A stretch of DNA of 64,000 nucleotides from the IMG/VR virus record IMGVR_UViG_3300042465_005589, positions 124,001 through 188,000 of that record, one strand, 5' to 3'. Below, piece after piece: positions 439 to 60,746 of the stretch. The translations under genes were made by a program, and so were the position numbers. Position 1 is the stretch's first letter. Each line of letters opens with the position of its first letter. The notes beneath the pieces are model-generated. The model was given only the letters and a program-made list of their open reading frames with translations, was not told where the DNA came from and searched no databases.

Positions 439-828
439 TTAATCATACATTTTATCAGCATCTTTCGGGTGCGATTTTTCGTATTTTTTAATTATTGAAC
501 CGGACTTTGCGTTAGCCTCATCTTCATTTTTACCACCAATATCACCACCTCTATCTCTATTGAGAATTGTTCGTTGATATTCATGAATCCACTCATGAGT
601 TAATGTTCTTAAAATATCGCGATTCATTCTCCCTTTAGATAAGACGAATATTTCACTATTGTCATTTCTAAGACCTGTAGTCATATTTGTGTCTCTCTTA
701 CCTACAAAAATAATGGTTAAGTCTCTTTTCAAGGGGCATTCTGTTTGCAAGTAACTAATGAAATTATTAAAAAATTTAAAATTATCTTTAGGTATATCAG
801 AATTAATATGTTTAATTGTAATTTTCAT
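439..828 (-). CDS. putative zinc metallopeptidase-like protein
   Basis: LRTLTHEWIHEYQ (HExxH) followed by NEDEANA; TATTTAT motif upstream (834-840). Confidence 0.6.
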   Translation of the reverse strand: MKITIKHINSDIPKDNFKFFNNFISYLQTECPLKRDLTIIFVGKRDTNMTTGLRNDNSEIFVLSKGRMNRDILRTLTHEWIHEYQRTILNRDRGGDIGGKNEDEANAKSGSIIKKYEKSHPKDADKMYD

Positions 829-833
829 ATTTT

Positions 834-863
834 ATAAATATATCACAATTGCTAAGTATTTAT
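834..863. promoter_or_regulatory. back-to-back TATTTAT motifs (candidate phage late promoters) between divergent genes
   Basis: ATAAATA at 834-840 (minus-strand sense) and TATTTAT at 857-863. The same motif lies about 3-20 nt upstream of roughly 20 other genes, e.g. near 12940, 13520, 15057, 17461, 20396, 20453, 24081, 25161, 28378, 35876, 39069, 41792, 42096, 48062, 53178, 54037, 57049, 60291, 60649. Confidence 0.65.
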
Positions 864-879
864 ATATAAAAGATTAAAC

Positions 880-1470
880 ATGTCAAAAAAATTAATAATA
901 ACTGAAGAAGAAAAAGATGAAATAAAATCTTTACACAATATTAATGAACAAATTGGGTTTGAGGAAATTATTAACTATGTTAAAAATTTATTAAATAATA
1001 TGGGTAAGGGAACTGAGTCTAAACCAAACACCAATATTGTTACAAGTAATATAACATCTGATGATGACATTTATAAGGGTATTTTAGAATGTATCGGGGC
1101 TAAACCAACAAAAAATAATATGTTATTTATGTATGCTTGGAGACAAGCCGAAGGAGGTGGGTCATCAAACAACCCCTTTAATACCACTCAAAAATGGGCA
1201 AATGCAACAATTCTTAAAAATAGTTCTGCTGGTGTTAAAAACTATAAAACACCTGAAGATGGAATACAAGCAACTTGTAAAACATTAAAAAATGGTAGGT
1301 ACCAAAGTATTATAGACGGGTTTAAAAATGATGTGGGACTATCCAAATTAACAGATGCTGTTGTAAATTCGCCTTGGGGTACTAAGGATTTATTACGTAC
1401 AGTAACTCAAGGATATATCGCTGGTAATACACCAAAACCAAAACCAATTAATAGAACTGAAATCGTTTAA
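880..1470 (+). CDS. putative lysozyme-like peptidoglycan hydrolase with IITE leader
   Basis: AWRQAEGG..NNPFNTTQ...GVKNYKTPEDGIQATCKTLKNGRY...SPWGT resembles lysozyme-fold phage muramidase/glucosaminidase domains; N-terminus MSKKLIITEEEK. Confidence 0.55.
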   Translation: MSKKLIITEEEKDEIKSLHNINEQIGFEEIINYVKNLLNNMGKGTESKPNTNIVTSNITSDDDIYKGILECIGAKPTKNNMLFMYAWRQAEGGGSSNNPFNTTQKWANATILKNSSAGVKNYKTPEDGIQATCKTLKNGRYQSIIDGFKNDVGLSKLTDAVVNSPWGTKDLLRTVTQGYIAGNTPKPKPINRTEIV

Positions 1471-1475
1471 ACAAG

Positions 1476-1500
1476 AAAACCGACATCAGTCGGTTTTTTT
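1476..1500. terminator. bidirectional intrinsic terminator
   Basis: AAAACCGAC-ATCA-GTCGGTTTTTTT between convergent genes. Confidence 0.8.
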
Positions 1501-1852
1501 ATTTAATAAATTGTAGTAAAACATAACATAGTTTGTATCCTGTGAACGCCCCTAAAGCGGAAGGTATCGGGAACACAATTAATTTACCCAAGTCAGTTAC
1601 GTATTTTGGACGGTTCACAATTTTACCCATATAGAAGTAATATACAATATACCCCACCAAAACAGCAATATCTGTTCGTGTTGCAATAAAAACCACTAAG
1701 GTGGCACCTAAGAATCCAAAAGTAAAATTGTCTCTTACACCTTCCCAAACTTCTTTGTTTGAGGCGGACTCATACTCCTTAACAATTTTTTTAATTTTTA
1801 CTTTATTCTTTTTAAAGTAATTATTCTCCGATTCTATATTTTGCTCTTCCAT
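1499..1852 (-). CDS. hypothetical membrane protein
   Basis: ORF with 2-3 hydrophobic segments. Confidence 0.75.
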   Translation of the reverse strand: MEEQNIESENNYFKKNKVKIKKIVKEYESASNKEVWEGVRDNFTFGFLGATLVVFIATRTDIAVLVGYIVYYFYMGKIVNRPKYVTDLGKLIVFPIPSALGAFTGYKLCYVLLQFIK

Positions 1853-2009
1853 CTAATGTTTCCGCTGTAAATTTATCCTTATTTAAGAATGTTAGTTCTA
1901 ATTGAATACTTGCTATTAATAATTCTTCAACTTGGTCCCAAGTTATCAAACCTTTCATCCATAATGTATGGAGTGACCTCATTATTTCAAATTCTGTTGC
2001 TTCGTTCAT
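1821..2009 (-). CDS. hypothetical protein
   Basis: 62-aa ORF in a co-oriented overlapping run. Confidence 0.65.
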   Translation of the reverse strand: MNEATEFEIMRSLHTLWMKGLITWDQVEELLIASIQLELTFLNKDKFTAETLDGRAKYRIGE

Positions 2010-9621: not shown

Positions 9622-9846
9622 ATGGGAAAACCAAGTTCAAAAGGAAAGTATGTTGTTAAAGCGAATCTTTACGACATTTATGTATTAGCAACGTCAAGAC
9701 CGGACACAACAAAAAAACACGGGTATTCAATGGGTTTTGATTTCCGAATCTATAAAAATGGAAAACTTGTTGAGAAAGGATTAAAATCTAAAGATGCTGC
9801 CGTTGCCAAAGCATTAACATTAGTTCCAAAAAAACAAAAAGCATAA
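9622..9846 (+). CDS. small basic hypothetical protein
   Basis: Likely start MGKPSSKGK after the promoter at 9584. Confidence 0.75.
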   Translation: MGKPSSKGKYVVKANLYDIYVLATSRPDTTKKHGYSMGFDFRIYKNGKLVEKGLKSKDAAVAKALTLVPKKQKA

Positions 9847-10580
9847 TGAATTACGGAAGAGAGTTTCAAAAGTTCGCAATGAGCGAAAGAGGGGTTTCAA
9901 GTCTTAACTTAGATTACTACCAAAAACATATTGAGAGTGTTACCCCATATATCTTGGAAGAAAGAGAGATGAGAGCAACTCAACTTGATATCTTTTCTCG
10001 ACTTATGATGGACCGAATTATTTGGGTTTCAGGACCGGTTGAGAGTCAGATGGCATCTATTATCCAAGCACAACTTATCTTCTTGGAAACGACCGATAAA
10101 AAGGATATCAGTATGTATCTTGACACACCGGGAGGTTCCGTATTGTCAGGTCTTGGAATCCGAGATACTATGAACTACATCAAACCGGATGTTGCAACAT
10201 TAAATGTTGGAATGTGTGCGTCTATGGGTTCTGTGTTAGTATCTTCAGGAACAAAAGGAAAAAGAAGTTCATTAATCTTCTCAAAGATTATGACACATAT
10301 GGTGTCTCACGGAACACAAGGAAATGTTCAGGACACTCGTATTAACCAATTCGAGGCAGAGAAATATAACTATATGTTATTCAAAATCTTGGCAGAGAAC
10401 TGCGGGAAAACATTTGATGAGATGTATGAGTCATCAAGAAATGACAAATGGTTCAACTCGGATGAGGCAAAATCATTTGGTTTAATTGACAACATCGTTG
10501 GATTAGAGACAAACAAATCTATGACAGAAATGATGGTTGGGTTTGATGAGTTCTACACTAAAGAAATCTTAAAACGATAA
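9846..10580 (+). CDS. clpP: ATP-dependent Clp protease proteolytic subunit
   Basis: DIFSRLMMDRII, YLDTPGGSV, GMCASMG (Ser), MTH (His), DKWFNSDEA (Asp); Bacteroidota-type N-terminal extension. Confidence 0.95.
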   Translation: MNYGREFQKFAMSERGVSSLNLDYYQKHIESVTPYILEEREMRATQLDIFSRLMMDRIIWVSGPVESQMASIIQAQLIFLETTDKKDISMYLDTPGGSVLSGLGIRDTMNYIKPDVATLNVGMCASMGSVLVSSGTKGKRSSLIFSKIMTHMVSHGTQGNVQDTRINQFEAEKYNYMLFKILAENCGKTFDEMYESSRNDKWFNSDEAKSFGLIDNIVGLETNKSMTEMMVGFDEFYTKEILKR

Positions 10581-11805: not shown

Positions 11806-11834
11806 AAACCCTCAACTATTGTTGGGGGTTTTTA
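11806..11834. terminator. bidirectional intrinsic terminator
   Basis: AAACCCTCAAC-TATT-GTTGGGGGTTTT between convergent genes. Confidence 0.75.
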
Positions 11835-12934
11835 TCTTTTAATAGGTAATATAACTTACTTAATTTCTTTGTCATCTTAAGACAAATGTTTCTCGTTTGA
11901 TTAATTTCATATTTGAAGAATCGTTCATAATCTTTACCAAACCTTGTTATCTTACCTAAATATTTATCAAAATATTTTTGTTTATCACCACTGAATCCCA
12001 TCATTGATTCAAAAAAGTTGTCCGATAAAAAGTCCCTCATTCCACCAGCCTTCCAATTTAATAACGTTTTGAAAAATTTTTGTAATGTAATGTCAACCAT
12101 TTCTTCATCGGTTGCGTCCTTTGGATAATCTATATTGTTATCATCAAATGTTTCTTTTATTTGAGGAATAATTACTTTTAAATCTTCTCTTAATTTTTCA
12201 TAACTTAAGTTAGCCCCTTCTCTATAATTCTCATAAACTTTATGATTTGTTATGAATTTATAAAACTCCTCTTTTGTTATACCACTCTCTTTTAATGCCG
12301 CGAAAATTTCAGTTGCTCTAACCAAATTTTCTGTGGTGTGAGCAAAATACATATAACCCAATAATTGATTCAATGGTGGTATGTTTCCAAATTTTCTTTG
12401 TGAACCAATATTATAATTAACTCTTTTATGTGTTTTGACTATTGAGTTAACGGATTCATCATAAGCGTGTTTTAGTTCGTGAGCTAAACTTGAAACCATA
12501 ATAGTTCGTTCTTTTTTGAACTCATCAATCACTTCTTGAGTTGTCACATCATTGTCAATTACAAAACTAATTGATAATATAACCTTGTTCATATTTTGGT
12601 TTGATTCAAAATTAAACTTGGCATTCATTTTAACCTTCCCGTGATGAGTCATACCTATTAATGAAATTTTAGGTAATTCACCGTCTGCACTACGATAGTC
12701 GTTTATATCATCAACATTAAAAGACACCTTTATTGTCTTAAATTTATAATCATTAATTTGGAAATCACCTTTTAAAGTAATTGTCTTTGTTAGAAAAGAA
12801 TTTATGTCATCATTAGGGTTAATTCCGGATATAATTTTGTCGTATAGTTGTTGAGCAATTTCAACGATGTTAGTTGGAACACCTACGGCTTCGGTCAATT
12901 TAATATATTGTTTTTCGTTGATTCTAATTTTCAT
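11816..12934 (-). CDS. leader-bearing protein with HExxH motif
   Basis: MKIRINEKQYIKLTEA leader; LAHELKHAYD. Confidence 0.75.
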   Translation of the reverse strand: MKIRINEKQYIKLTEAVGVPTNIVEIAQQLYDKIISGINPNDDINSFLTKTITLKGDFQINDYKFKTIKVSFNVDDINDYRSADGELPKISLIGMTHHGKVKMNAKFNFESNQNMNKVILSISFVIDNDVTTQEVIDEFKKERTIMVSSLAHELKHAYDESVNSIVKTHKRVNYNIGSQRKFGNIPPLNQLLGYMYFAHTTENLVRATEIFAALKESGITKEEFYKFITNHKVYENYREGANLSYEKLREDLKVIIPQIKETFDDNNIDYPKDATDEEMVDITLQKFFKTLLNWKAGGMRDFLSDNFFESMMGFSGDKQKYFDKYLGKITRFGKDYERFFKYEINQTRNICLKMTKKLSKLYYLLKDKNPQQ

Positions 12935-13096: not shown

Positions 13097-13513
13097 TTAT
13101 TTTAAAATTGTTTTTACACGAATGTGAAAATTATCTTCAAACCATTTTTTGAACGGTTCTTCCCATCTGTCACCAAAAATACTATCTAATTGATTTGATA
13201 AATGAGTATTCTCAAATTCAAGTATTGGGGAATCTTTAATATTTTTTTTTAATTGATGGCGGTCATACTCATGTCCTGTTGGTGGCAAAGCACTCTCATC
13301 TTCAATCCAATATTCTTTATCATACCATCTAAATAAAGTATTCTCGCCCCACCCTTCTTCATAATCACCTTCATAGAATTCCACAGCGTAATCAACCTCA
13401 TTACCCATATCGTCAGAACCAGGTGTCCAACCAATATTATTAACATCAAACATATTGTTAAGATGTTTAACGACTAAGTCATTAATTTTATTTTCAGTTA
13501 TAATAAATTTCAT
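13097..13513 (-). CDS. leader-bearing member of the expanded paralog family
   Basis: Start MKFIITENK at 13513; ends FKKWFEDNFHIRVKTI. Confidence 0.8.
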   Translation of the reverse strand: MKFIITENKINDLVVKHLNNMFDVNNIGWTPGSDDMGNEVDYAVEFYEGDYEEGWGENTLFRWYDKEYWIEDESALPPTGHEYDRHQLKKNIKDSPILEFENTHLSNQLDSIFGDRWEEPFKKWFEDNFHIRVKTILK

Positions 13514-13964: not shown

Positions 13965-15038
13965 TTAAATCAACGAATCATATGTTTGTTGTCCAACAAT
14001 TCCATCTACCGCAAGACCATTATCTTTTTGATATTGTTTAACCATTTCTTTTGTGGTTGGTCCATAAATACCGTCACATTTTTCAACATCATCTTTACAT
14101 GCTTCAACATCAGTAGTTATAGAACCCGAAGTTGTTCCACTATATCCAATTTCAATTAATATTTTTTGAACTTGTTTAACTAAATGACCTTTCGCATTTA
14201 ACCCAATGACTTTATTATCTTCAGTTACCGCTGACCAATCTGTATCAGTTGGTTGTACATATCCGGATGCGTTTTTTGAAATATCTTTAAATTTAAGTAC
14301 AGGTTTTGTTCCATCCCACTCCCAAGTACCTCTACTTTTACCAGTTCCTTGACCTTTATTCCAAACATAAACATCACCATCATCATAAATTCTCATTTGG
14401 CTATCAGTATCATTTGGGTCAGTAGAATTGACTATCACTAAATCCCATATATTTTCATCATCTTCTAATTTATCCATTTTATCAAATTTCCAATTTGAGT
14501 CTTTATTACCTTCATAATATTTAACAACATCTTCCCATTTATCTTTATTTGTAGATTCAGTTTTTGCTGGTGCCGCAGCCGCAGGTGCAACATCTTTCAA
14601 TGGTTTTGTTATTTTTTTAAATGTTAATACCGGAAATTCATCACCATCAATATTTAGTTTAATAGGTGTTGTAATAACAGATTTAAACTTATTTAGTCTT
14701 GTAATAATTTTATTTAAATCATCTCCTTGACTAAATTCTCCTTTAATCATATCGGTAAAACTAGAATAACCTGTTTTTTTATCGGCAAATAATGTTAGTA
14801 ATCGATGAAGTTCACTTGCATATGTAATCTTATTAAGACCATCTATTATATCTTGAGGCTCAGTTCCCATTCCGGATGCACCATCAATCATATTTTTGTA
14901 TGCAAGTTGAGCGTTTTGTTCTTTTTTACTAACAGGGGGGCGTTGTTCACCAATTTCTTGTTCTGAAATAACAACACCTCGTTGATATCCCAAAAGGTAT
15001 TTCATATACCCAAGTTCTTCTGTAATTATATTTTTCAT
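13965..15038 (-). CDS. annexin-like repeat plus C-terminal peptidoglycan-binding domain protein
   Basis: MIDGASGMGTEPQDII...GYSSFTDMIKGEFS (annexin-like); VKQVQKIL...DGIYGPTTKEMVKQYQKDNGLAVDGIVGQQT (PG_binding_1). Confidence 0.7.
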   Translation of the reverse strand: MKNIITEELGYMKYLLGYQRGVVISEQEIGEQRPPVSKKEQNAQLAYKNMIDGASGMGTEPQDIIDGLNKITYASELHRLLTLFADKKTGYSSFTDMIKGEFSQGDDLNKIITRLNKFKSVITTPIKLNIDGDEFPVLTFKKITKPLKDVAPAAAAPAKTESTNKDKWEDVVKYYEGNKDSNWKFDKMDKLEDDENIWDLVIVNSTDPNDTDSQMRIYDDGDVYVWNKGQGTGKSRGTWEWDGTKPVLKFKDISKNASGYVQPTDTDWSAVTEDNKVIGLNAKGHLVKQVQKILIEIGYSGTTSGSITTDVEACKDDVEKCDGIYGPTTKEMVKQYQKDNGLAVDGIVGQQTYDSLI

Positions 15039-16249: not shown

Positions 16250-16621
16250 TTACCAAGTTCTGCAAGCCCAATATTTAGCTTTCCATCTTGGTCCCGGATT
16301 ATCACAATTCATTCTTGCTCTAAAAGATTTTCTTCTAGCAGGATTATTTTTCTTAATGACCATTCGTTTTCCTTTTGCAGATTTTCCACCAAAACCAAAG
16401 TTAACCTTAACAACATTTCCTTTGTCGTTCTTAACATAAACTTTGAATTTCTTAATATCTCCTTGCATAATTTTACCAAGTTGAACTTTACGTCCCTGAT
16501 ATTCCGCCTCAGTCAACAAATCACCAACAACAAAGTTGGTCTCCTCAACTGAACCATAAAAACTATCATCTAATTCATTGAATAGTCTATTGTATTGTGA
16601 TTCTGTAATTATTATTTTCAT
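16250..16621 (-). CDS. leader-bearing basic protein of a family common in T4-like aquatic phages
   Basis: MKIIITESQY; EAEYQGRKVQLGK...KKFKVYVKN...NPARRKSFRARMNC...KYWACRTW. Confidence 0.75.
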   Translation of the reverse strand: MKIIITESQYNRLFNELDDSFYGSVEETNFVVGDLLTEAEYQGRKVQLGKIMQGDIKKFKVYVKNDKGNVVKVNFGFGGKSAKGKRMVIKKNNPARRKSFRARMNCDNPGPRWKAKYWACRTW

Positions 16622-17457
16622 TTTTTATAACTTGTCATTGTCGGTTTATTTCCTGTTCCCACTTTTGGGTCTTTCTTTTCTGCTCTTCTCTTTTGTTGAG
16701 TCATCGCTTTCTTCTCATCCTTATCATACGATGAAGCCACCTTAGGTGTTTCAGATGAAACCTTTTTTGATGGACGACATTTTGGATATGACTTACCATC
16801 AGCATCCTTTCTTCCACAAGGTGGATGTTTCCCGTCAACTTTTTTGCTTACATCAACCCACTTTTCCTTAAACCAATTACGCAAATCTTCATTAACATTT
16901 TCGTTCTTTGGTTTAATTCCTTTTTTCTTCATGTTGATTGCAATTGCTGCTTGTTGTGCCGGACTTGAAGCTTCATTAGTTTCCTCAGATTCGTTAGCCG
17001 ATTTTTTAACTGTTCTCCATCCACCACCTTTTGATTTATATCGTTTGGCTGCAGCACCATTACAATATGCACTCGGACAAACTTTATATTTTGACCTTGC
17101 CCAAGCCAAACTTCGAGACCATAACTCAGGATTGGTTGGTTTATTCTTACCTTCGGTTAACTGATTATCACCGGAACAATGTTTATCAAAATAATTATAA
17201 ATTAGTTCTTTAAATTCATTTTCAAGTAGTTCTAAAAAATCATCTTTATCCATACCATCAAAATCATTAATGTCCGTAAAATAATCTTCAGCGTTGTATT
17301 TAACACCTTCCATAAAATGCTCATCATTGTCATAATCACAAACATACATACCATCCATTAAGTTGTATAGGAAATTTTCAATTCTATGTATTCTTCTTCT
17401 AATTGAAGAATCCATCTCCAATAACTTGTATTGTCTTTCTGTAATTATAACTTTCAT
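16618..17457 (-). CDS. leader-bearing multi-module protein (DUF5872-like modules)
   Basis: KPTNPELW...PSAY...YKSKGGGW; EASSPAQQAAIAI; EDLRNWFKEKWVD...PKCRP. Confidence 0.7.
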   Translation of the reverse strand: MKVIITERQYKLLEMDSSIRRRIHRIENFLYNLMDGMYVCDYDNDEHFMEGVKYNAEDYFTDINDFDGMDKDDFLELLENEFKELIYNYFDKHCSGDNQLTEGKNKPTNPELWSRSLAWARSKYKVCPSAYCNGAAAKRYKSKGGGWRTVKKSANESEETNEASSPAQQAAIAINMKKKGIKPKNENVNEDLRNWFKEKWVDVSKKVDGKHPPCGRKDADGKSYPKCRPSKKVSSETPKVASSYDKDEKKAMTQQKRRAEKKDPKVGTGNKPTMTSYKK

Positions 17458-19932: not shown

Positions 19933-20391
19933 TTATATTTCTTCTCCGAAAATATCATCGGTCCAATTCTCGGGAATCATTACAATAATATATCCTTGTC
20001 TAACTTCAATTAATGATTCCGGAACCACACCATTAAGTTGTTCCATTATTTCAGGTCGTTCTTTAAAAACAACTCTCAACTTACCATCAGGAGCAGTATC
20101 AACAACTTTGTGGTTAAACCCATCCATAATTTCCTTGAATTTATCAAGTCCTCCGAAATCTTCAGATTCTTCAGAATCAATATCCAATTCACCACCCAAA
20201 AATCTTTCAGGTACATTACTCTCACCACCACTCTTTAAATATTTAATTTCTTCATCAGTCATACCCTCAAGTCCAACCTCATTATATAAATCTAAAATAA
20301 TATCGTAGTAGTCATAATCAAATTGTTCATCCAAAAGTTTTAACACAATTTTTTTTAAATCCGATTCCGTTAATTTTATAATCTTTTTCAT
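19933..20391 (-). CDS. leader-bearing acidic protein
   Basis: MKKIIKLTESDLKKIVLKLLDEQ. Confidence 0.8.
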   Translation of the reverse strand: MKKIIKLTESDLKKIVLKLLDEQFDYDYYDIILDLYNEVGLEGMTDEEIKYLKSGGESNVPERFLGGELDIDSEESEDFGGLDKFKEIMDGFNHKVVDTAPDGKLRVVFKERPEIMEQLNGVVPESLIEVRQGYIIVMIPENWTDDIFGEEI

Positions 20392-22322: not shown

Positions 22323-22640
22323 TTACACACATTCCTTATCGTAAATACCTTGTAGATAATCGGCAAAATTATCTACCATAAAATAATACAAAGTATCTTT
22401 GGTTTTAGAATCAATCTTTCCGCCGTTTTCATAATAGTAATCATCAATTAAATCCAATACCAGCATATCACACATTTCACCAATAAAATCACCCAAACTT
22501 CCATAATCACAAGGATTATAATTCTGTATAACAAAATCTAAATGACCTTTAATTTCGTCATAATTAAACCTTCTACGAAGTGATGCCGGGATATTCTCCA
22601 TTAACAAGTTATGCTGTCTTTCAGTGATTATAATTTTCAT
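22323..22640 (-). CDS. leader-bearing protein (PCDY subfamily)
   Basis: MKIIITERQH...LRRR...NPCDY; similar to the N-terminal module of 16618-17457. Confidence 0.8.
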   Translation of the reverse strand: MKIIITERQHNLLMENIPASLRRRFNYDEIKGHLDFVIQNYNPCDYGSLGDFIGEMCDMLVLDLIDDYYYENGGKIDSKTKDTLYYFMVDNFADYLQGIYDKECV

Positions 22641-38733: not shown

Positions 38734-39063
38734 TTAGTTTAATATATGTTTATTTACGTGATGAACTTTTTCAACCGGTAACTCAAAAAACTCCGAGAAC
38801 CATTTACCAACTAACCTTTTTACTTCAGGTGGAGTATAACTAAAATATGTAATTGGTTTTACCACATCTTCACAAATATATAACGTTTTATTTCTATCAC
38901 CATAAAGCATAATAACACCATCACCATTACGAAATTCGATTTTTTTTTGTTCTCCAACACTATCTGTCATATAACTAACATCTTCATACATATTAGAGAA
39001 GGCTTTATCTAATTCTTTTTTAGCTAATTGGTCTCTTCGGCTTTCTATTATCAAAATCTTCAT
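38734..39063 (-). CDS. leader-bearing family-domain protein
   Basis: Start MKILIIESR; GKWFSEFFELPVEKV. Confidence 0.8.
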   Translation of the reverse strand: MKILIIESRRDQLAKKELDKAFSNMYEDVSYMTDSVGEQKKIEFRNGDGVIMLYGDRNKTLYICEDVVKPITYFSYTPPEVKRLVGKWFSEFFELPVEKVHHVNKHILN

Positions 39064-41412: not shown

Positions 41413-41787
41413 TTACTTTTTATTGAAGTCAGTATTACTAACATACTTCATGTCCCGGATTTCGTCAGGATATATTACACTCTTAAATCTTTTAGTGAAT
41501 TTTTTATATATTCTTTTAATAATTTCATCTTTAATTATATCATATAATTTATATGAACTAACCCATACACTAACCAAATCATAAAACTTTTCATCATTCA
41601 CCACAACTCTATTTATGTCAGGGTAATATCTTGAAATAACATCACGTCTATTTCCCGGAGTCAGAAATTCCACATAACGTAAATTAATACTTCTTGTTTG
41701 AAACGAATCTCTACTATCCACACCAATACTATTAACTATGGTATCAATTATTTTTTCTAATTTCTCTTCACTAATTTTAATTTCCAT
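41413..41787 (-). CDS. leader-bearing hypothetical protein
   Basis: MEIKISEEKL. Confidence 0.75.
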   Translation of the reverse strand: MEIKISEEKLEKIIDTIVNSIGVDSRDSFQTRSINLRYVEFLTPGNRRDVISRYYPDINRVVVNDEKFYDLVSVWVSSYKLYDIIKDEIIKRIYKKFTKRFKSVIYPDEIRDMKYVSNTDFNKK

Positions 41788-42116: not shown

Positions 42117-42602
42117 ATGAAAGAATTAATTAGACGGATATTAAGAGAATATACAGAACCAAAACCTATTTTAGTATACGAAATTGTTGTAAACGATATT
42201 TTAAGTGAACAAGAGTTTATTAGACAAATATATAGAAATAACGACAATTTAATTAATTTATATAAAAACCCACATTCTCAGGAATTCATAGGAAATAAAA
42301 CCTCATTTCAAAGAGTTGACCCAGATGAGATTAACGATTCAATAATGGATATTGAACCGGCAATAATCAGTTCAGCTAAAAGAGTAATGGAAACATGTAT
42401 TACAAGATGTTCAATTAATGTTATCGATAATATAGCAGGAATTGATTACCACATGTGGTTAAATGGAACAAATAATAGGATTAAAATAATAATTAACACA
42501 TCAATCAGACATCCCAACCATCTAAAATTTAGAGTTAATGAATCTCCAACAATAATAGTGGATAGGTACGGTGACATATCAACAAGAAACATATATAATT
42601 AA
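42117..42602 (+). CDS. leader-bearing hypothetical protein
   Basis: MKELIRRILRE. Confidence 0.8.
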   Translation: MKELIRRILREYTEPKPILVYEIVVNDILSEQEFIRQIYRNNDNLINLYKNPHSQEFIGNKTSFQRVDPDEINDSIMDIEPAIISSAKRVMETCITRCSINVIDNIAGIDYHMWLNGTNNRIKIIINTSIRHPNHLKFRVNESPTIIVDRYGDISTRNIYN

Positions 42603-45744: not shown

Positions 45745-46454
45745 TATGTCCAGTAATTATGTTCCTTTGTGAAGAACTCATCGTTATTTCTATTAAACCA
45801 AGATTTAATCATCATCTTAACCATATAGAATAAACCTTTGTTCTTAAATCGTCTTGATGTGGTATAAACAATTTTGTCCGCTACATAAAACTTATTTGGT
45901 TTTATCTTTGAACTTAAATGATAATCCTCAGCGAACTTGTCATCCGGATTAAATCCTCCCAATGAATTAAATTCCTCTAAATTAAATAACATAAATCCTC
46001 CAACCGCAAATGGTGTAGAGAATTTGGTTAAGTATTGGATAACATCAAATGATTTATACACATAATTGTAATCACCATCGTCAGTTCTCATTTTAGTTGT
46101 TGACAAATGATAATCATTTTCTTTCATAACTTCAACCATACAATTTAATAGGCAATATTGGTTGATGAATATGTCGGCATCCAAAAATAAAACATAAGGA
46201 GTTTTTATCTTTTTGGTTCCGTTGTTTCTGGCTTCGGCAGGAAATCCCCCTTTAACTATTTTTACATTGATATTGGTATGGTATGAACCAAGAATACATT
46301 TCTGTGTGAATCCATCGTCCGTTGAAGAATCGGCAACCATTACATTTACACCTTTAATATTATTTTGCAAGTTTAACAATCCTAAAGTTTTCTTTATGAT
46401 TAATCCCTCATTTTTACAGGGGATTACAATTGTTAAATCCTTACTTAAACTCAT
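45744..46454 (-). CDS. family 2 glycosyltransferase
   Basis: IVIPCKNE, VADSSTDD, ARNNG, FLDAD, GGFML, EDYHL. Confidence 0.9.
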   Translation of the reverse strand: MSLSKDLTIVIPCKNEGLIIKKTLGLLNLQNNIKGVNVMVADSSTDDGFTQKCILGSYHTNINVKIVKGGFPAEARNNGTKKIKTPYVLFLDADIFINQYCLLNCMVEVMKENDYHLSTTKMRTDDGDYNYVYKSFDVIQYLTKFSTPFAVGGFMLFNLEEFNSLGGFNPDDKFAEDYHLSSKIKPNKFYVADKIVYTTSRRFKNKGLFYMVKMMIKSWFNRNNDEFFTKEHNYWT

Positions 46455-48055
46455 ATACTTATATCATCTAATCTATAATTAACATTTTCATTTACAACAC
46501 TATCATCAGGTGATGGATACCATCTGTCATCGGGGTCAAAGTCAGGTTTATCAATATGACTTTCAGATAATAATTCATTAAATATTCCTTCTAAATCATA
46601 CTTACCATCCCTATTCATATGATTTTCAAATATTTCATCAACCCAACCTTCATCAATATCAACTAAATTAGCTAAATCGACTTGAATTTTGGCTCCGGTG
46701 TCATTAAATTCATATACATTACCATAAAACTCTAACGCCGACTCAATTTCTTTCTGTAGAAAATCTACATAATCATTTGCGTCAGCATCATTTATCGCAC
46801 CACCAATAGCATTTCTTATTTCCCAATCATCATCCACTTGTTTGATAGAATCTTCTAAATCTAAATCCTCATCTAATTCAACACCATCTCTTTCTGCCAT
46901 TTTTCTAACAATATCCCACAATCTTTCTTCGGTTGGTTTGTCTACTGTATATTGGAAATAACTACCAAAATCTTCGTAACCGTCTTGATTCCACAAATCC
47001 CAAGCATCACCAGCCATTATTTCAACAAAAATACTTGTTCTTGTTTGTTTTCCGGTTGTTCTATTAGTATAAGTACGATAGGTACATCCATCAACATAAT
47101 CATCAAAATCCTCAGGTTTAATTTCTAATGAGAATCCTGTTGGTAATGGTTCCATTTCAATAATACCCATCTTATCTAACAATCGTTGCATAGGTCTTGA
47201 CGAGAACAACTCCGGTCTATTTTGATACAATTCTTTGATTGTTTGTTCCGGTAAGTCAGACAATTTAAAATCCTGTTCTGATGCGTACTCCGTTCCAAAT
47301 CCTTGAATTAAATAATCATCTTCTTCACCTTCACCACCTAACACGTAGAATAACGGTTGAATGTATTGATGGTATTCATCTTTTGGTTTTGAGTTCTTAA
47401 CACCCTTCAACTGATACATAATACCATCCTCACCAATTGCCGCAGTTAGAACTGATTTGTTTAATTTATATTTGTTGTTAATCGGAATTACTTGTCTTAA
47501 TGAATAAAGATATCCATAAGAACTTCTTCCACAATGCCCCATTCTATTACATTCTTCTGATGAGTTTTTTGTATTCAAATCAGCCCAATAAAACCCATTT
47601 CCATTTTCATCAGTGAAATCTAATATAGTTGGGTTTTCTTCCTTATAATTAATATCACCCTGACCAATTTCCAAACTATCGTGCCATTGTTTTGATTTAC
47701 GATGTAATTCATTCAAATTTAACTCTTTATTTTCACCTAAATTACCATTCAAACCAACTCTAATCCAATCCATTATTGATGTAATATCTTGTCTATGTGA
47801 ATTAATAGCTAAATTATTGTTCATATTTTTAATCGTAGCTCTTTTATATTCTTTATCATCGTCAAATTCCGGAAGGATTGATACTAAACGTTTAGAATAA
47901 AAATCAATAAATTTATTACCCATCCAAACAGATAAAGGACCACATAGTTTATCCAATAGGTCAGCATTCTCCTCATTAAACCCAATCTTATCCATTAAGA
48001 TTTGTTTCTTGGATGCCTCCGTAATGATTTGTCTTATACTCTCAATTAATTTCAT
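46451..48055 (-). CDS. leader-bearing large protein (possible PcfJ-like domain)
   Basis: Start MKLIESIRQIITEA; ECNRMGHCG...YQLKGVKNSKP. Confidence 0.75.
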   Translation of the reverse strand: MKLIESIRQIITEASKKQILMDKIGFNEENADLLDKLCGPLSVWMGNKFIDFYSKRLVSILPEFDDDKEYKRATIKNMNNNLAINSHRQDITSIMDWIRVGLNGNLGENKELNLNELHRKSKQWHDSLEIGQGDINYKEENPTILDFTDENGNGFYWADLNTKNSSEECNRMGHCGRSSYGYLYSLRQVIPINNKYKLNKSVLTAAIGEDGIMYQLKGVKNSKPKDEYHQYIQPLFYVLGGEGEEDDYLIQGFGTEYASEQDFKLSDLPEQTIKELYQNRPELFSSRPMQRLLDKMGIIEMEPLPTGFSLEIKPEDFDDYVDGCTYRTYTNRTTGKQTRTSIFVEIMAGDAWDLWNQDGYEDFGSYFQYTVDKPTEERLWDIVRKMAERDGVELDEDLDLEDSIKQVDDDWEIRNAIGGAINDADANDYVDFLQKEIESALEFYGNVYEFNDTGAKIQVDLANLVDIDEGWVDEIFENHMNRDGKYDLEGIFNELLSESHIDKPDFDPDDRWYPSPDDSVVNENVNYRLDDISI

Positions 48056-52085: not shown

Positions 52086-53171
52086 TTAAGGGTTGTAATG
52101 TCTTTGATATGATTTAAATCTTTGTTGACTAACATCATCAGTATCAATTATATTAAAATACTTCTCAACATTTGGATTGTTAAGTAACTTAAGAAAATAA
52201 TTATTTACTTGACCTCTAGAGATAGATAATCTTTTTAATTTGGTATATCGTCTGATAGATAATTCTTTAGACATTTTTTTATACAACCAATACGGTATTT
52301 TAATAAATTCAAACCCTTCTTTACCTTCAACCGGTCCTAACATTTCTATTTGAGATTTTGGTAGTTTAGCAAAATGAATGTCAATGTTATATGATTCCGC
52401 ACCATCCATAAATAATCCTGAGCGGTCTAATTGTTCGTAAATATTTAAAACATCAATCATCGTCCCACTGTCACCAACTATCATATAAGCACCTATCATC
52501 GTTTTTTCTTCTGGAAGATAAACTAACTTATTAAAGTCAGGTGTTGTATCAATTGGTTCTTCTTGTTCATTAATTCTTGAAGACAATGGTGGGTTTAATA
52601 AAAACTTATCATTAACCCAACGTCTTAATTCATTCTCAACAAAATATTCAGGTACTTCCTCATCGTCCGGTTTTTCAGTCGCCAACTCAGCAATGTGTTT
52701 AGCAAATTTAACTTTATATTTATCATCCAACATGGTCATTAAACCATCTGAAATAAAGAATATCTTAGAGAAGGGGTCATCTAAATGTATGTCGCCTTCC
52801 GCAATTTGAAATGATTTAAGAATTGCTCTTCCCCAAAAAGTTTTATAACTTTCTGTTTCAGTTAAACTTGGTTTCAATATCTTATTGATAGCTCTAACAA
52901 CACTACCAACAACACCCGGAATCATAAGTTGTGGTAAAAACCAAGGCAATAATCTAATGGTCGCCTTAACACCTCCCTCACCAATGTGTTTGAATATTCT
53001 TTTCTTTGTCGCACTTTCAACAATCGCCCGTAACTGACCAAAGGTAATTTTACCCTGAGCATGACAAAACTTTTCACTATCACAAATATTTTTGACTGTA
53101 GTTTTTGAAGGTTCTACATCAATATTCTCAGTTAATTTCGTATATTGCGGTCCTGTAATCTTAATTTTCAT
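52086..53171 (-). CDS. leader-bearing two-module protein
   Basis: Start MKIKITGPQYTKLTEN; internal SRINEQE junction. Confidence 0.8.
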   Translation of the reverse strand: MKIKITGPQYTKLTENIDVEPSKTTVKNICDSEKFCHAQGKITFGQLRAIVESATKKRIFKHIGEGGVKATIRLLPWFLPQLMIPGVVGSVVRAINKILKPSLTETESYKTFWGRAILKSFQIAEGDIHLDDPFSKIFFISDGLMTMLDDKYKVKFAKHIAELATEKPDDEEVPEYFVENELRRWVNDKFLLNPPLSSRINEQEEPIDTTPDFNKLVYLPEEKTMIGAYMIVGDSGTMIDVLNIYEQLDRSGLFMDGAESYNIDIHFAKLPKSQIEMLGPVEGKEGFEFIKIPYWLYKKMSKELSIRRYTKLKRLSISRGQVNNYFLKLLNNPNVEKYFNIIDTDDVSQQRFKSYQRHYNP

Positions 53172-56114: not shown

Positions 56115-56645
56115 TTAATTCATTTGGAAATATCGACTAGAGTATTTAGGTCTGTCAAAAATAATGTTTATACCTGTCTGTGATGTAATGTTGTCCTTAA
56201 AATAATCATTGATACCCCAATTAACTTCATCTTCAACTTCCCATCCGTAATCATCATTGTCTAAAGCATCCTCTAATGTCTTGTGGTCACCACCTACATC
56301 AACATGACCACCCAAATCATCAACCTTAATTTTAACAACAACATTTGGTTCTGAGCTATCTAAATACCAATTACCAATACCAATAACCTCAAAGAAAAAA
56401 TTATAACCACCAAAATTATCTATATGGTGTGGGTTCTGAAGTAATAAGGTTTTAGCAAGTTCTTTCGATTCTTTTTCACCTCTCCACTCAATTAAGTATT
56501 TGTAGGCTTGGTTATAAGTAATGTCACTATCACTATTATCTAACCCAAAAAAAGAAATGAAATTCTTATCTACCTTACCAGCTGTTTTGTCCCAATACTT
56601 AAAAAGTATATTTTTGTATTTAGATTCAGTTATTATTAATTTCAT
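56115..56645 (-). CDS. leader-bearing hypothetical protein
   Basis: MKLIITESKY. Confidence 0.8.
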   Translation of the reverse strand: MKLIITESKYKNILFKYWDKTAGKVDKNFISFFGLDNSDSDITYNQAYKYLIEWRGEKESKELAKTLLLQNPHHIDNFGGYNFFFEVIGIGNWYLDSSEPNVVVKIKVDDLGGHVDVGGDHKTLEDALDNDDYGWEVEDEVNWGINDYFKDNITSQTGINIIFDRPKYSSRYFQMN

Positions 56646-57770: not shown

Positions 57771-57775
57771 AATAC

Positions 57776-57807: not shown

Positions 57808-57810
57808 ATA

Positions 57811-58434: not shown

Positions 58435-58493
58435 AATAAAATTGTTTTATTGTTTGTTTGTATAGTATAATTATTTTTTATTAAGAAGTCAAA

Positions 58494-58829
58494 TTACCAC
58501 ACCTCATATCCAAAACTTTTATACTCACTACCCCGTAAATCTTTTATATTCTCATTTATTGGTTCTAAAATAAATTTTTCAAAATCGTCCGGTTTCATCA
58601 ATGCCGCCTCAATAAAACCAAAAACAGGTGCCATTTGATTTATGTAAGAAACAAGGTCATTGTCATTGTAAGATTCAGGTATCAAGTTTGTTAGAACAAG
58701 GAAGTACTCCTTTGTAGGATATCCGTAATGTAAATAATAAAAACGATATTCAGGATGTCTCCTCAAGTGAGGAAACTCCTTATATATCTCTTTTAATAAT
58801 AATTGTAAAGGTTTTGGATACGGATTCAT
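58494..58829 (-). CDS. hypothetical protein
   Basis: ATG 4 nt after the promoter at 58834. Confidence 0.75.
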   Translation of the reverse strand: MNPYPKPLQLLLKEIYKEFPHLRRHPEYRFYYLHYGYPTKEYFLVLTNLIPESYNDNDLVSYINQMAPVFGFIEAALMKPDDFEKFILEPINENIKDLRGSEYKSFGYEVW

Positions 58830-58891
58830 AGTACAAAGATAATACTTAATCCCATATAAACAAAAAAAAGGAACTAAATGTTCCTTTTTTT

Positions 58892-59812
58892 TTAATCTAA
58901 TAATTCTATCTCAGTGTTATCATCCGTTAAGTATTTCGGATAAGTTCTTAGTATGTCTTGTTTAATTGTATTTGTAATATTGTTCAATAACTCAGGATTG
59001 TCTCTAAAATTGGAATCCGGTATCATTTTCCTGTCAACCATTTTACCAGCTTTAAGAACTTTGACAGATATTTTAATTTTACCATCAACATCCTCAATGT
59101 CTTTAATCATAAAATTAACTCTGTGAGCATTATCCCCCCAACCTCCACTGATTAATTTTGATTGATTAGTTATTTTATCTTTATCTTTTACAAAGTTTGA
59201 AACTCTACTAGATTTAACCGTTTCAATGTTACGACTTCCTCGAATAAGACCTTCCATCTCATCTTTGGTAATACTCATAACATTTGCATTTAAGTTTGAA
59301 TCAAATTTAACAGGGTTAACCTGACTCATTTGTTTTCTTGTAGAACTTGAATACGTTTCTAATGTTCTGTACCATTGGTCATTAATAAATAAGAACACTG
59401 GATACCACCCATATGATGTAATAACATAATACCAATCATTATTATTATTTACATTCCACTGACCTTCAATATTTGAACCCTTAAACGGCATTCTAGCCGA
59501 CGCATATTCATAAGCCGTATTATTAGTAACTTTTCTCTGTTTGAATTGTCTGAAATCCTTGAAATTCTCGTTTGTTAAATTTTCATAATCCCCTTCCGGT
59601 CTGAAGTTAGCCGTGTATACTTCATAATAAAAATGAGAGTCGTTTGGTGACATTCCAAGTACCGGTAAAATAGACCTTAAAAATTTTAAAAATTCAGGTT
59701 GAGTCTTAGTTTCCCTTTTATGTTTGTCAATATACTTAAATAACATAATTTCCTTTTTAGTTAAAGGACCTTCTTGTTCTTCTCGTAGTATACGTCTAAT
59801 TAGTTCTTTCAT
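58892..59812 (-). CDS. leader-bearing hypothetical protein
   Basis: MKELIRRILREEQE. Confidence 0.8.
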   Translation of the reverse strand: MKELIRRILREEQEGPLTKKEIMLFKYIDKHKRETKTQPEFLKFLRSILPVLGMSPNDSHFYYEVYTANFRPEGDYENLTNENFKDFRQFKQRKVTNNTAYEYASARMPFKGSNIEGQWNVNNNNDWYYVITSYGWYPVFLFINDQWYRTLETYSSSTRKQMSQVNPVKFDSNLNANVMSITKDEMEGLIRGSRNIETVKSSRVSNFVKDKDKITNQSKLISGGWGDNAHRVNFMIKDIEDVDGKIKISVKVLKAGKMVDRKMIPDSNFRDNPELLNNITNTIKQDILRTYPKYLTDDNTEIELLD

Positions 59813-59816
59813 TATA

Positions 59817-60275
59817 TTATTTTAAGAATCTTAATTTATATAATGTGGAATATATTAATTCTTGAACTGTATCAATTTGATTTTGAAGAAATGATTCTTT
59901 CACACTTTTTCTGTTTTTTTCAACCATTGAATCCAATGATTTGAAGTACTTAATAACTTGTTCAGAACTTTTATACTCTTCAGTTTTGATTGAATTGTAT
60001 CCAGTAATCACATCGTGTTTACCTTGATAACTTTCAATAATACCATCTATAAGTGCATCAATCCCTTCATAATACCCTTGTAGAGCCTTATGTTCTGAAT
60101 ATGATTTTGTTTGTAAATGAAAAATGTGTACTTGAGTTTGTGAATGCAATAAAATAGACACCATATCTTTAAACCCTGAATTGGTTTTTGTATCATCTAC
60201 CTCAATTTCACCCTCTTCTTTTTGCTCTCTCATTAAGTTTTTTTTCTTAACTTCTAATAATACATTGTTTCCCAT
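59817..60275 (-). CDS. Dps/ferritin-like four-helix protein (DUF5856-like)
   Basis: LHSQTQVHIFHLQTKSYSEHKALQGYYE.IDALIDGIIESYQG...NQIDTVQELIYSTLYKLRFL. Confidence 0.8.
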   Translation of the reverse strand: MGNNVLLEVKKKNLMREQKEEGEIEVDDTKTNSGFKDMVSILLHSQTQVHIFHLQTKSYSEHKALQGYYEGIDALIDGIIESYQGKHDVITGYNSIKTEEYKSSEQVIKYFKSLDSMVEKNRKSVKESFLQNQIDTVQELIYSTLYKLRFLK

Positions 60276-60317
60276 AATAAAGTTTTACATATAAATATAT
60301 CGTTTAATTGTAATTTA

Positions 60318-60635
60318 TTATTTACCAATTATAATTTCATCGTAATTTAATTTACCCATTCCATCATTGTTTTGGGACTCACCCTTAAATTCATCATACA
60401 TAAATGTTTTTACAACACCAATAATACTTTGTTCTGCTTGAGATATTTTAGATTCCATCCAATCTTCAAGTTGCTCCCCATTTTCCATTTTTTCCCACAT
60501 AGCGTTAGCTAATGTTGCAATAGTAAATAATTGTTGTTTAGCCATGTAAGAACCTTCTTCATGATTCTCGTTAACTGTTCTCATTTTACTAATCAACTTT
60601 TCAAGTTGTTTTTCTGTTAATATAACGTTACCCAT
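60318..60635 (-). CDS. leader-bearing protein with a module common in T4-like aquatic phages
   Basis: MGNVILTEKQL; EGSYMAKQQL...LEDWMESKISQA. Confidence 0.8.
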   Translation of the reverse strand: MGNVILTEKQLEKLISKMRTVNENHEEGSYMAKQQLFTIATLANAMWEKMENGEQLEDWMESKISQAEQSIIGVVKTFMYDEFKGESQNNDGMGKLNYDEIIIGK

Positions 60636-60746
60636 AATTCTTTTATTTATAAATATCCGATTAAACAAAAAACCCCCACTTTATGTGAGGGTTAATTTTG
60701 GACCGACATAAAGTCGGCGACTCCACCATCCTATTTTTAAAGAGAA

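Follow-up and report, generated by a model that had tools for sequence, protein, structure and literature searches.

Capsid-targeting-like N-terminal leader peptides on many unrelated genes of a T4-related freshwater jumbo phage

In phage T4, the internal proteins IPI, IPII and IPIII, as well as the Alt propeptide, bear a short N-terminal capsid targeting sequence (CTS) that loads them into the capsid and is removed by the gp21 prohead protease, which cleaves at the motif [ILV]-x-E (PMC3012670, PMC9026906). In giant phages of the phiKZ type, including phiKZ itself (gp175), 201phi2-1 and SPN3US (gp245), tens of head proteins are cut after glutamate by a gp21-related protease, and a large internal protein cargo is carried in a jumbo capsid (PMC9026906, PMC5694885, PMC7411985). 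Here we examine a 64,000-nucleotide window, positions 124,001 to 188,000 of IMG/VR record IMGVR_UViG_3300042465_005589, of a 318-kb T4-related jumbo phage in which about 30 unrelated genes begin with one of three short conserved leader peptides. An initial sequence-only reading had proposed that these leaders are a portable packaging tag marking an unusually large cargo of virion-loaded, injected proteins. The leaders resemble new, greatly expanded versions of the T4 tag, although this resemblance is inferred from sequence alone.

The observation that prompted this work is confirmed. The leaders fall into class A (MK-IIITE-xQYxxL), class B (MNLxENIxRI..MMG) and class C (MKELIRRILRE). Strict patterns identified 27 leaders genome-wide, 23 of them in the window; all lie at or next to the first ATG of an ORF, and none lies inside any ORF of 40 aa or more. 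Looser patterns gave 38 leaders genome-wide. Within the window we count 29 clear cases, comprising 22 of class A or A', 4 of class B and 3 of class C, with three more that are marginal (Table 1 includes two of these). A class A regular expression hit the proteome 24 times, and 23 of the hits lay within the first 25 residues, where a uniform spread would place 10.7%. Codons vary synonymously (ATA/ATT/ATC, ACA/ACT/ACC/ACG, TTA/CTA), showing that conservation is at the protein level. The leader is longer than the seven residues initially quoted.

Table 1. Leader-bearing ORFs of the window, two marginal cases and the phage ClpP gene. Coordinates are those of the window; a slash marks the position following the glutamate of a putative or known cleavage motif.
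Coordinates	Strand	Leader class	Leader sequence	Length (aa)	Body and remarks
880..1470	+	A/D hybrid	MSKKLIITEEEK...	196	Weak glucosaminidase-like body; TATTTAT 16 nt upstream
11816..12934	-	A variant	MKIRINEKQYIKLTE	372	[ILV]xE ends at residues 7 and 15; TATTTAT 4 nt upstream
13097..13513	-	A	MKFIITENK...	138	Small paralogue family
13965..15038	-	A/D	MKNIITEELGYMKYLLGY	357	C-terminal PG_binding_1
16250..16621	-	A	MKIIITESQYNRLFNE		Leader plus linker; basic DUF5872-like body starts after LLTE/AEYQGR
16618..17457	-	A	MKVIITERQYKLLE	279	DUF5872 at residues 175-262; first gene of its operon
19933..20391	-	A'	MKKIIKLTESDLKKIV	152	
22323..22640	-	A	MKIIITERQHNLLME	105	
22637..22999	-	A	MKIIITENRLKGLIN	120	Paralogue of 27999-28373
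22996..23340	-	A	MRMIITEDRLHRL	114	
23671..24075	-	A	MKILITESQYNFLIE	134	Hairpin plus TATTTAT 4 nt upstream
24119..25156	-	A variant	MNILIKERQYKVLVSE	345	
27706..27996	-	A	MKIIITENQFNNIW	96	
27999..28373	-	A variant	MRIIIAESKLMNMV	124	Operon head
33453..33911	-	B	MNLHENIHRIQSLLTE	152	
33915..34337	-	B	MNLIENIQRINTLISE	140	
34337..35095	-	B	MNLQENIHRIHQMMGVINE	252	
35097..35870	-	B	MNLNEDIQRIREIMISEE	257	Predicted flavodoxin-like FMN reductase-fold body; operon head; AF2 pLDDT 87.6, with the leader low-confidence and the body above 90; Foldseek finds FMN reductases at E 4e-8; homologues align only from residue about 24
36502..36837	-	A variant	MRVLLTEDKRRQL	111	
36834..37223	-	A variant	MKVIISENKVNQII	129	
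37220..37831	-	A	MKVIITETQYRKLQE	203	L13-Q14-E15 invariant in 35 orthologues
37831..38139	-	A	MKVIITENRLNSSIE	102	
38139..38732	-	C	MKNLIRKILREE	197	
38734..39063	-	A variant	MKILIIESRRDQL	109	Head of a 6-gene all-leader operon (39063 down to 36502)
42117..42602	+	C	MKELIRRILREY	161	
52086..53171	-	A variant	MKIKITGPQYTKLTE	361	Lacks E7 but keeps L-T-E at residues 13-15
56115..56645	-	A	MKLIITESKYKNIL	176	
58892..59812	-	C	MKELIRRILREE	306	
60318..60635	-	A'	MGNVILTEKQLEKLI	105	
41413..41787	-	Marginal, A'-like start	MEIKISEEKLEKII	124	
46451..48055	-	Marginal start	MKLIESIRQIITEASKK	534	
9846..10580	+	None			Phage ClpP protease gene (PF00574, E 3.8e-53); not part of the leader set, relevant to an alternative explanation

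The bodies to which the leaders are attached are diverse, as the sequence-only reading had suggested, although only some of its assignments are upheld. After removal of 22 residues, only 7 pairs among the 38 proteins were still related by BLASTP. The PG_binding_1, DUF5872 and flavodoxin-like assignments were verified, along with the weak glucosaminidase match, whereas an 'ART-like' assignment rests only on an Atlas lead of 0.78 and a poor AF2 model, and the 'annexin' and 'HExxH' labels remain readings of the letters alone. The ORF that we take to be the proposed 'ParB-like' gene (29631-30893) has no leader and no Pfam hit. It had also been noted that the first gene of nearly every such unit follows a TATTTAT motif. 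This motif heads 29 of 38 leader genes or operons, but it also heads 177 of 377 other genes, including the operons of the DnaB-like helicase, DNA polymerase and ribonucleotide reductase (RNR). It is therefore the general promoter of the phage, and is specific neither to these units nor to late genes.

The leaders behave as portable modules of 15-19 aa. In IMG/VR, leader A occurs on at least 119 stretches and at least 45 unrelated body families, and leader B on at least 119 stretches and at least 55 families, with conservation stopping after about residue 16 for A and about residues 19-20 for B. Of the large relatives, 17 of 17 carry 1-12 strict MK.IITE starts, with zero control hits, and all 8 complete relatives have an S77 protease.

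The genome belongs to the T4 superfamily and encodes a T4-type head module, with a gp20 portal (matching phrog_213), a gp21-type prohead protease (Peptidase_S77, E 1.2e-23) that is 36% identical to T4 gp21, an acidic scaffold and a gp23 capsid protein (Gp23, E 2.6e-74). Protease specificity appears to be conserved, since the T4 gp23 maturation site FLTE/A aligns with FLINE/A here and LINE-A is invariant in 11 relatives, and the protease N-terminus keeps GIL[VI]E, like LIE-9 of T4 gp21 (PMC9026906). Conservation of leaders A and B ends at an unforced [ILV]-x-E motif far more often than expected by chance. In class A, 76% of proteins have the glutamate at residues 13-18, against 14-16% in control windows, and in class B 77% have it at residues 16-21, against 7-10% in controls; the per-position peaks are 0.45 and 0.33, against a background of 0.018. 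For comparison, 67% of a T4-type CTS set have glutamate at residue 10. All 29 window leaders have such a site ending at residues 5-16.

Three body modules that carry leader A or B here carry the experimentally defined T4-type tag MKTYxEF..E in other sequences, two in IMG/VR viral contigs and one in an unclassified 2.4-kb metagenome contig. One sequence reads MKTYREFVTE/AEYQGR.. and is 66% identical (E 6e-35) to the body of 16250-16621. A second, which lies on the unclassified 2.4-kb contig, reads MKTYFEF.. on the flavodoxin-like body of 35097-35870. A third, MKTYQEFISE/AKKCWPGY.., shares the KCW module carried by two leader A proteins (P0043 and P0080), and BLASTP also matched this module in a class B protein. 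In a further alignment, variable N-termini end at an invariant [LIV]-x-E/A before the conserved body, and this includes the cultured Kyanoviridae phages HTVC008M and C48C1. T4 CTS sequences were read from NC_000866, and a search of the present genome found no T4-type CTS, consistent with replacement by the new leaders. AF2 gives a low-confidence N-terminal helix (pLDDT 48-66) ahead of a confident body (above 90). With regard to expression, RNA-run contigs of relatives cover leader genes 16229-17179 in lake metatranscriptomes where capsid-protein transcripts of the clade are abundant, and Chen et al. 2022 (PMC9723584) describe late-stage expression in this clade.

We propose, with moderate confidence, that the three leaders are new sequence classes of prohead-targeting propeptides and functional counterparts of the T4 CTS. 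In this model, each precursor is made from the phage's own TATTTAT promoters, and its N-terminal 15-19 residues dock it onto the scaffolding core while the gp23-type shell assembles, leader A being a hydrophobic strand-like segment followed by a short helix and leaders B and C being helices. The S77 protease would then cut after glutamate in [ILV]-x-E at the end of the leader, and in some proteins again at the linker/body junction (for example LLTE/AEYQGR), leaving mature bodies that stay inside the head and exit with the DNA. Our analysis establishes the leaders themselves, their portability, the T4-type head module, the terminal [ILV]-x-E and the sharing of bodies with T4-type CTS proteins; docking, cleavage, packaging and ejection or injection are inferred, for a phage without a cultured representative, virion proteomics or cleavage data. 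The original interpretation of an injected, packaged cargo is supported in part, by inference.

Several features do not fit this model comfortably. The tagged set amounts to about 10% of the genes, whereas the T4 reviews consulted name only a handful of CTS-type cargo proteins (IPI-III, Alt), and some bodies look like ordinary intracellular enzymes (sigma-70 r2/r4, DHH, FMN reductase-like) rather than obvious injected cargo. Leader proteins are not basic like the T4 internal proteins (median pI 6.0 against 5.8), and their bodies are not depleted of [IL]xE (observed/expected 1.02 against 1.11). The residue after the glutamate is often S, N, D or E, rather than the A or S seen in T4. In the small Nx[RK][LV] subfamily the similarity runs on to about residue 25, so part of that leader may belong to the fold. 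Since TATTTAT also drives replication genes, co-regulation with head genes is weak evidence.

It is also possible, though unlikely, that the leaders are a general docking or oligomerization module for some other phage hub, such as a tail, baseplate or membrane complex, or for self-association, and are neither directed to the capsid nor cleaved. Very strict conservation across more than 100 families suggests one specific receptor, some leader genes lie next to tail genes (G000 286391-287542, beside the putative sheath gene), and the extended similarity in the small subfamily could be read in the same way. This explanation, however, gives no reason for the terminal protease motif or for the swap with the T4-type CTS, the bodies are small globular enzymes rather than fibres, and AF2 does not pack the leader onto the body.

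The main rival, which we nevertheless consider improbable, is that the leaders are degrons or unfolding tags for the phage's own Clp machine, which would turn over or remodel the tagged proteins on schedule. In addition to ClpP, the phage encodes a 682-aa ClpA/C-like double AAA+ ATPase without an N-domain (AAA, AAA_lid_9, AAA_2 and ClpB_D2-small domains), and these could read N-terminal tags. The ATPase is present in 10 of 10 leader-bearing relatives, always 10-25 kb from the protease gene, and absent from the leaderless phage immuto; Chen et al. also note Clp protease in this clade (PMC9723584). ClpX N-motif 2 consists of Met, a basic residue and three hydrophobic residues, a parallel that is a lead only. 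The co-occurrence rests on one clade against one outgroup and is a kinship effect. A degron explains neither the [ILV]-x-E at the leader's end nor why the same bodies carry the T4-type CTS in other sequences, including T4-like contigs, and tagging about 10% of a phage's own, strongly conserved proteins for destruction is hard to rationalize.

A role in translation is similarly doubtful. The leaders could provide a favourable nascent peptide, or an A/U-rich initiation region for Shine-Dalgarno-less or leaderless mRNAs on ribosomes modified by the phage-encoded bS21, since 22 genes have TATTTAT only 4 nt before the ATG, implying near-leaderless mRNAs, and the leader codons are A/U-rich. However, third-position G/C variants are tolerated while the amino acids stay fixed, internal genes of operons carry the leader too, three unrelated peptide classes exist, conservation reaches residues 13-19 and ends in [ILV]-x-E, and most genes with the 4-nt spacing have no leader. 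Descent of all these genes from a single paralogous family, which the few paralogue pairs (7 at E<1e-3 after trimming) might suggest, is already contradicted by the unrelated bodies, with their different Pfam domains and folds, and by the occurrence of the same body with leader A, leader A', the T4-type CTS or none.

The genome fits the clade of bS21-encoding jumbo phages of freshwater Bacteroidetes described by Chen et al. (PMC9723584): it is 318 kb and 31% GC, its bS21 gene lies on the opposite strand inside the TerL-portal-protease-MCP region, and it has Clp protease. The Results of that paper do not mention N-terminal leaders, and full-text searches for the motifs found no paper. Encapsulin cargo-loading peptides are likewise short conserved peptides that direct diverse cargo enzymes, including flavoproteins, into an HK97-fold shell, but they are usually C-terminal, bind the shell protein directly and are not cleaved, and encapsulins contain no DNA and have no protease. 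For the phiKZ-like giant phages, the reviews consulted describe a short cleavage motif but no shared conserved N-terminal leader; the present phage is of the gp23/T4 type. The closest parallel is the T4 CTS. There is no sequence similarity between the leaders and MKTYQEFIAE, there are three distinct classes instead of one, about 30-38 genes are tagged per genome with more than 100 body families across the clade, and conservation is far stricter. Nonetheless, both are N-terminal, 10-19 aa long, start with MK or MN, end in [LI]-x-E and are attached to unrelated bodies, and the leaders occur in a phage with a gp20-gp21-gp22-gp23 type head module and share three body modules with proteins that carry MKTYxEF..E.

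The genome analysed here is a 318,164-bp IMG/VR virus record of 31% GC that CheckV rates as complete, and it carries a T4-type head module of the gp20/gp22/gp23 kind on the minus strand, including a prohead protease of the gp21 family that is 36% identical to T4 gp21 (Table). The window is bases 124001-188000 of this record. A gene for ribosomal protein bS21 lies on the opposite strand inside this module, an arrangement that Chen et al. 2022 describe exactly for the freshwater, Bacteroidetes-infecting 'bS21 phages' of 293-331 kb and 31-33.7% GC, which also carry Clp protease (PMC9723584), and this places the genome among them. The nearest cultured phages, Microcystis phage Mel-JY01 and Flavobacterium phage immuto, are distant, with portal identities of 36-40%, and a megablast search against cultured phages found no match. 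The clade is nevertheless abundant in metagenomes: at least 600 IMG/VR stretches encode a relative of this portal, of which the best 80 kept are 79-100% identical.

Table. Coordinates of features in the 64-kb window (window numbering), in the whole genome (genome numbering) and in one related locus.
Numbering	Coordinates	Strand	Feature	Observation
Window	880-1470		Leader gene	Weak glucosaminidase match
Window	3216-4502	-	Thymidylate synthase homologue	428 aa; Pfam match covers residues 6-343 in two stretches but only 234 profile positions, which suggests an insertion
Window	9846-10580	+	ClpP	E 3.8e-53
Window	13965-15038		Leader gene	PG_binding_1
Window	16229-17179		Leader genes	Covered by RNA-run contigs of relatives
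Window	16250-16621		Leader A gene	Basic DUF5872-like body
Window	16618-17457		Leader gene	DUF5872
Window	17458-17475; 24076-24092; 28374-28390		Examples of promoter-like motifs
Window	20464-22050	+	Lectin-domain protein	528 aa; Laminin_G_3/sialidase-N-like domain (E 2.6e-33); directly after a TATTTAT 4 nt from its ATG
Window	30900-33450		ORF-poor stretch	About 2.5 kb with few ORFs in an otherwise 92% coding genome; rich in runs of C and G (GGGGGGA/TCCCCCC); no tRNA or Rfam match
Window	33400-39100		Stretch queried for RNA runs	None listed for this exact stretch
Window	35097-35870		Class B leader gene	Predicted flavodoxin-like FMN reductase fold (AF2 pLDDT 87.6; Foldseek E 4e-8)
Window	37220-37831		Leader A gene	203 aa; AF2 model poor (pLDDT 58)
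Window	49305-50162	-	SPFH/Band 7 protein
Genome	37993-39174; 52495-53808; 93603-100862; 103028-103516; 117326-117631		Further N-terminal helical motif families
Genome	39256-41112	-	Gp23-type major capsid protein	PF07068, E 2.6e-74
Genome	41145-42695	-	Scaffold-like protein	516 aa, very acidic; class-B-like stretch at residues about 104-120
Genome	43090-43815	-	Peptidase_S77 (gp21-type) prohead protease	PF03420, E 1.2e-23
Genome	44411-44560	+	bS21 (locus L371)	Outside the window
Genome	45333-47189	-	gp20-type portal	phrog_213, E 5.8e-66
Genome	47951-49720	-	TerL
Genome	56857-58905	+	ClpA/C-like double AAA+ ATPase	682 aa, no Clp_N domain
L062	492-683		64-aa protein of a relative	C-terminal module of the product of window 37220-37831, directly behind leader A

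The observation that many unrelated genes begin with a shared leader is confirmed, and it is larger than the sequence-only reading reported. Strict patterns find 27 leaders in the genome, 23 of them in the window, and every one lies at the first ATG of an ORF or just after a spurious upstream start, with none inside an ORF. With looser patterns we count 38 leaders genome-wide and 29 clear cases in the window, plus three that are marginal. A class-A regular expression hits 24 times in the proteome, 23 of them within the first 25 residues, where 10.7% would be expected. Codons vary synonymously, including G or C at third positions, so the constraint is on the peptide, which is about 15 aa long for leader A and about 19 aa for leader B. 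After removal of 22 residues, only 7 pairs among the 38 proteins remain related. PHROGs and Pfam give almost nothing for the bodies, and the few domains that are recognized are listed in the Table. For the 203-aa leader-A protein, the 'ART-like' label of the sequence-only reading has as its only lead an Atlas match to Arr/PARP at 0.78. Its C-terminal module of approximately 50 residues (EMIKL.IKVGDT.MGGKFKNKK...) occurs alone behind leader A in a relative, showing that domains are shuffled behind the leader.

The leaders are portable modules that are used across a whole phage clade. A degenerate DNA pattern for MK.IITE.QY matched at least 119 IMG/VR stretches, whereas about one match is expected by chance from base frequencies, and the proteins fall into 45 unrelated body families. 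Positions that the pattern did not force are still conserved, residue 13 being L or I in 44 of 45 families, and all conservation stops after about residue 16. A pattern for MNL.ENI.RI also matched at least 119 stretches and 55 body families; its consensus is MNLQENIqRIkeMMG[LIV]..E, with conservation ending at about residues 19-20. One contig that matches this class-B pattern (locus L172, IMGVR_UViG_GVMAG-S-3300002186-40_000001) is labelled as a giant-virus MAG in IMG/VR and is probably a misbinned phage fragment. Hybrids such as MNLQENIRRILREE link classes B and C, although the strict class C pattern is rare in IMG/VR (5 stretches). All 17 large relatives (184-322 kb) carry 1-12 strict class-A starts, with zero control hits, and all eight complete relatives have the S77 protease. 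In contrast, no leader was found in Flavobacterium phage immuto, in which S77 and gp23 are present. The basic DUF5872-like body occurs with leader A and with other leaders (MSKNIITLSETDIQRIV, MSKIVRLTESDLKRII), and in Pelagibacter and Roseobacter phages the similarity covers only the body. A DHH-like protein carries the full leader in relatives but lacks its first ten residues in this genome (58% identity). Full-text searches for MKIIITE, LTESDL and similar strings found no paper, and the DUF5872 literature was uninformative.

Further N-terminal helical motif families exist in the genome, namely E..RI..LMG, ISE.EK.RIL.LH and LMGYD..KTL.EN, which occur on large proteins, some of them inside or next to the head module. 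In a related contig, L143, about half of the 34 genes start with a leader-like motif as judged by eye. The acidic scaffold-like protein also contains an internal stretch, EEILRVFQLMGPED, that resembles the class-B leader, but under our pattern it is conserved only in the three closest genomes, and we do not use it as evidence.

Several features link the leaders to the prohead protease. Aligned with T4 gp23, the capsid protein places FLINE|A where T4 has its maturation site FLTE|A, and LINE-A is invariant in 11 relatives. The N-terminus of the protease keeps GIL[VI]E, which is comparable to LIE-9 of T4 gp21 (PMC9026906). In both leader classes A and B, conservation ends at an [ILV]-x-E, the gp21-type cleavage motif, that was not forced by our search patterns: 76% of class-A proteins have the Glu at residues 13-18, against 14-16% in control windows, and 77% of class-B proteins have it at residues 16-21, against 7-10% in controls, with per-position peaks of 0.45 and 0.33 against a background of 0.018. 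All 29 window leaders have such a site ending at residues 5-16. For comparison, a set of 106 proteins with the T4-type tag shows Glu at residue 10 in 67%. A complex prediction of the S77 protease with residues 1-45 of the leader-A protein that carries the DUF5872-like body returned a score of 0.00, which is evidence neither way.

The strongest argument comes from bodies that are shared with T4-type tags. The T4 tags themselves, read from NC_000866, are MKTYQEFIAE|A (IPII, IPIII) and MKTFKEFTSTTTPVSTITE|A (IPI), and their targeting function is established experimentally (PMC3012670, PMC9026906). A scan for MKTY.EF starts found the T4-type tag, MKTY.EF[ILMV].E, on many different proteins in at least 117 IMG/VR viral stretches (loci L373-L488) and not only on 170-kb T-even-like genomes; recurrent bodies include ...ESSLSRIKSKSDKGG... 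and ...AKKCWPGYKKKG... One of these proteins, at locus L399, reads MKTYREFVTE|AEYQGR... and is 66% identical (E 6e-35) to the DUF5872-like body that carries leader A here; it lies on a contig with myovirus-like ORFs (a TerL-like and a sheath-like start, read by eye). In an alignment, A5, N-termini of 10 to about 110 residues all end at an invariant [LIV]-x-E|A immediately before the conserved body, and these N-termini include leader A, leader A', the T4-type tag, and those of the cultured Kyanoviridae phages HTVC008M and C48C1. A homologue of the flavodoxin-like class-B protein, P0247, starts MKTYFEF..., although it sits on an unclassified 2.4-kb contig. The KCWPGY module follows MKTYQEFISE|A in several contigs and follows leader A in two proteins, P0043 and P0080, and BLASTP also matched it in a class-B protein. 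On these three bodies, then, the leaders are interchangeable with a bona fide CTS at the level of sequence comparison. The simplest reading is that leaders A, B and C replace the T4-type CTS in this clade.

AF2 models the class-B leader as a low-confidence helix (pLDDT 48-66) detached from a confident body. In four lake metatranscriptomes the capsid-protein gene of the clade reaches contig depths up to about 1600 while the neighbouring 393-aa gene reads zero, a contrast indicating that the signal is RNA rather than contaminating DNA. Scaffold depth is 10-85, protease 1-8, and the leader genes at 16229-17179 read 1-17. This shows expression in natural infections, but only relatives at 85-95% identity are represented in the runs, as contigs, so depths are rough and say nothing about timing, and the runs were found with that very gene.

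The sequence-only reading had also noted that the first gene of nearly every leader-bearing unit follows a TATTTAT motif. TATTTAT(A) is strongly orientation-specific (62 against 7 upstream occurrences) and heads 29 of 38 leader genes, but it also heads 177 of 377 other genes, including the DnaB-like helicase and the DNA polymerase and RNR operons, and it is thus rejected as a late-gene marker. Genome-wide, (A)TATTTAT(A) sits before about half of the genes, spaced either 4 nt or 13-17 nt from the ATG; the 4-nt class implies near-leaderless mRNAs and often follows a C-run/G-run hairpin. A second promoter-like motif, TAnnTTTG, precedes other genes and resembles the Bacteroidota sigma-A -7 box. 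As a plain sequence fact, TATTTATA is the reverse complement of the T4 late promoter TATAAATA. Scans of the window for tRNAs and Rfam families found nothing.

The proposal that the leaders are a portable packaging tag, marking a large cargo of virion-loaded and injected proteins, is partly supported: it is the best-supported explanation and in our view somewhat more likely than not, but it rests wholly on comparative inference. What the sequences show is the leaders, their spread over unrelated bodies, the motif at which they end and the bodies held in common with T4-type tags, whereas cleavage by the prohead protease, packaging into the head and injection into the host are inferred. Some properties of the proteins do not favour this view. 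Leader proteins are not more basic than the others, there is no depletion of [IL]xE in their bodies of the kind that selection against internal cleavage sites would leave, and some bodies are not obvious cargo (sigma-70 r2/r4, DHH, FMN reductase-like).

It is also possible that the leaders are tags for a Clp machine. The phage encodes ClpP and an N-domain-less ClpA/C-like ATPase, and the latter is present in 10 of 10 relatives (60-96% identical), always 10-25 kb from the prohead protease gene, and absent from the leaderless phage immuto; the leaders also bear a resemblance to ClpX N-motif 2. However, a Clp tag, whose binding or degradation by the machine would be pure inference, does not explain the terminal protease motif or the exchange with T4-type tags, and the co-occurrence may simply reflect kinship. 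A more speculative and very unlikely version, which would be of great interest if true, is that the unfoldase reads the leaders and actively threads or hands over tagged proteins into the assembling prohead, with ClpP or the S77 protease then removing the tag; this would be ATP-driven protein loading of a viral capsid. DnaK is excluded as a general partner, since it occurs in only 2 of 10 relatives. A role at the level of translation is unlikely because the conservation is in amino acids, and descent of all these genes from a single paralogous family is contradicted by the unrelated bodies.

If the leaders are capsid-targeting propeptides, a simple sequence rule predicts the whole packaged and injected protein set of an abundant, uncultured clade of freshwater jumbo phages. 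That set would comprise about 30-40 proteins per genome and more than 100 cargo families, including lysozymes, PG-binding proteins, a DHH phosphoesterase, sigma factors and an FMN reductase-like enzyme, and the tags could serve as protein-packaging handles for engineering phages of Bacteroidota. The idea that a CTS is an evolutionary device for recruiting new cargo could then be tested directly.

Compared with the T4 CTS, which is already known, the leaders described here are likewise short (10-19 aa) and strictly N-terminal, are shared by otherwise unrelated proteins, end in (L/I)-x-E in most cases, and occur in a phage with a gp21-family protease. They differ in sequence: leaders A, B and C do not resemble MKTYQEFIAE or MKTFKEF...ITE, and no MK[TS][YF].[EQ][FY] start exists anywhere in this genome. 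If our interpretation is correct, what is new is that the T4 CTS principle has diversified into several non-homologous, strictly conserved tag classes and has expanded roughly ten-fold in a jumbo relative of T4.
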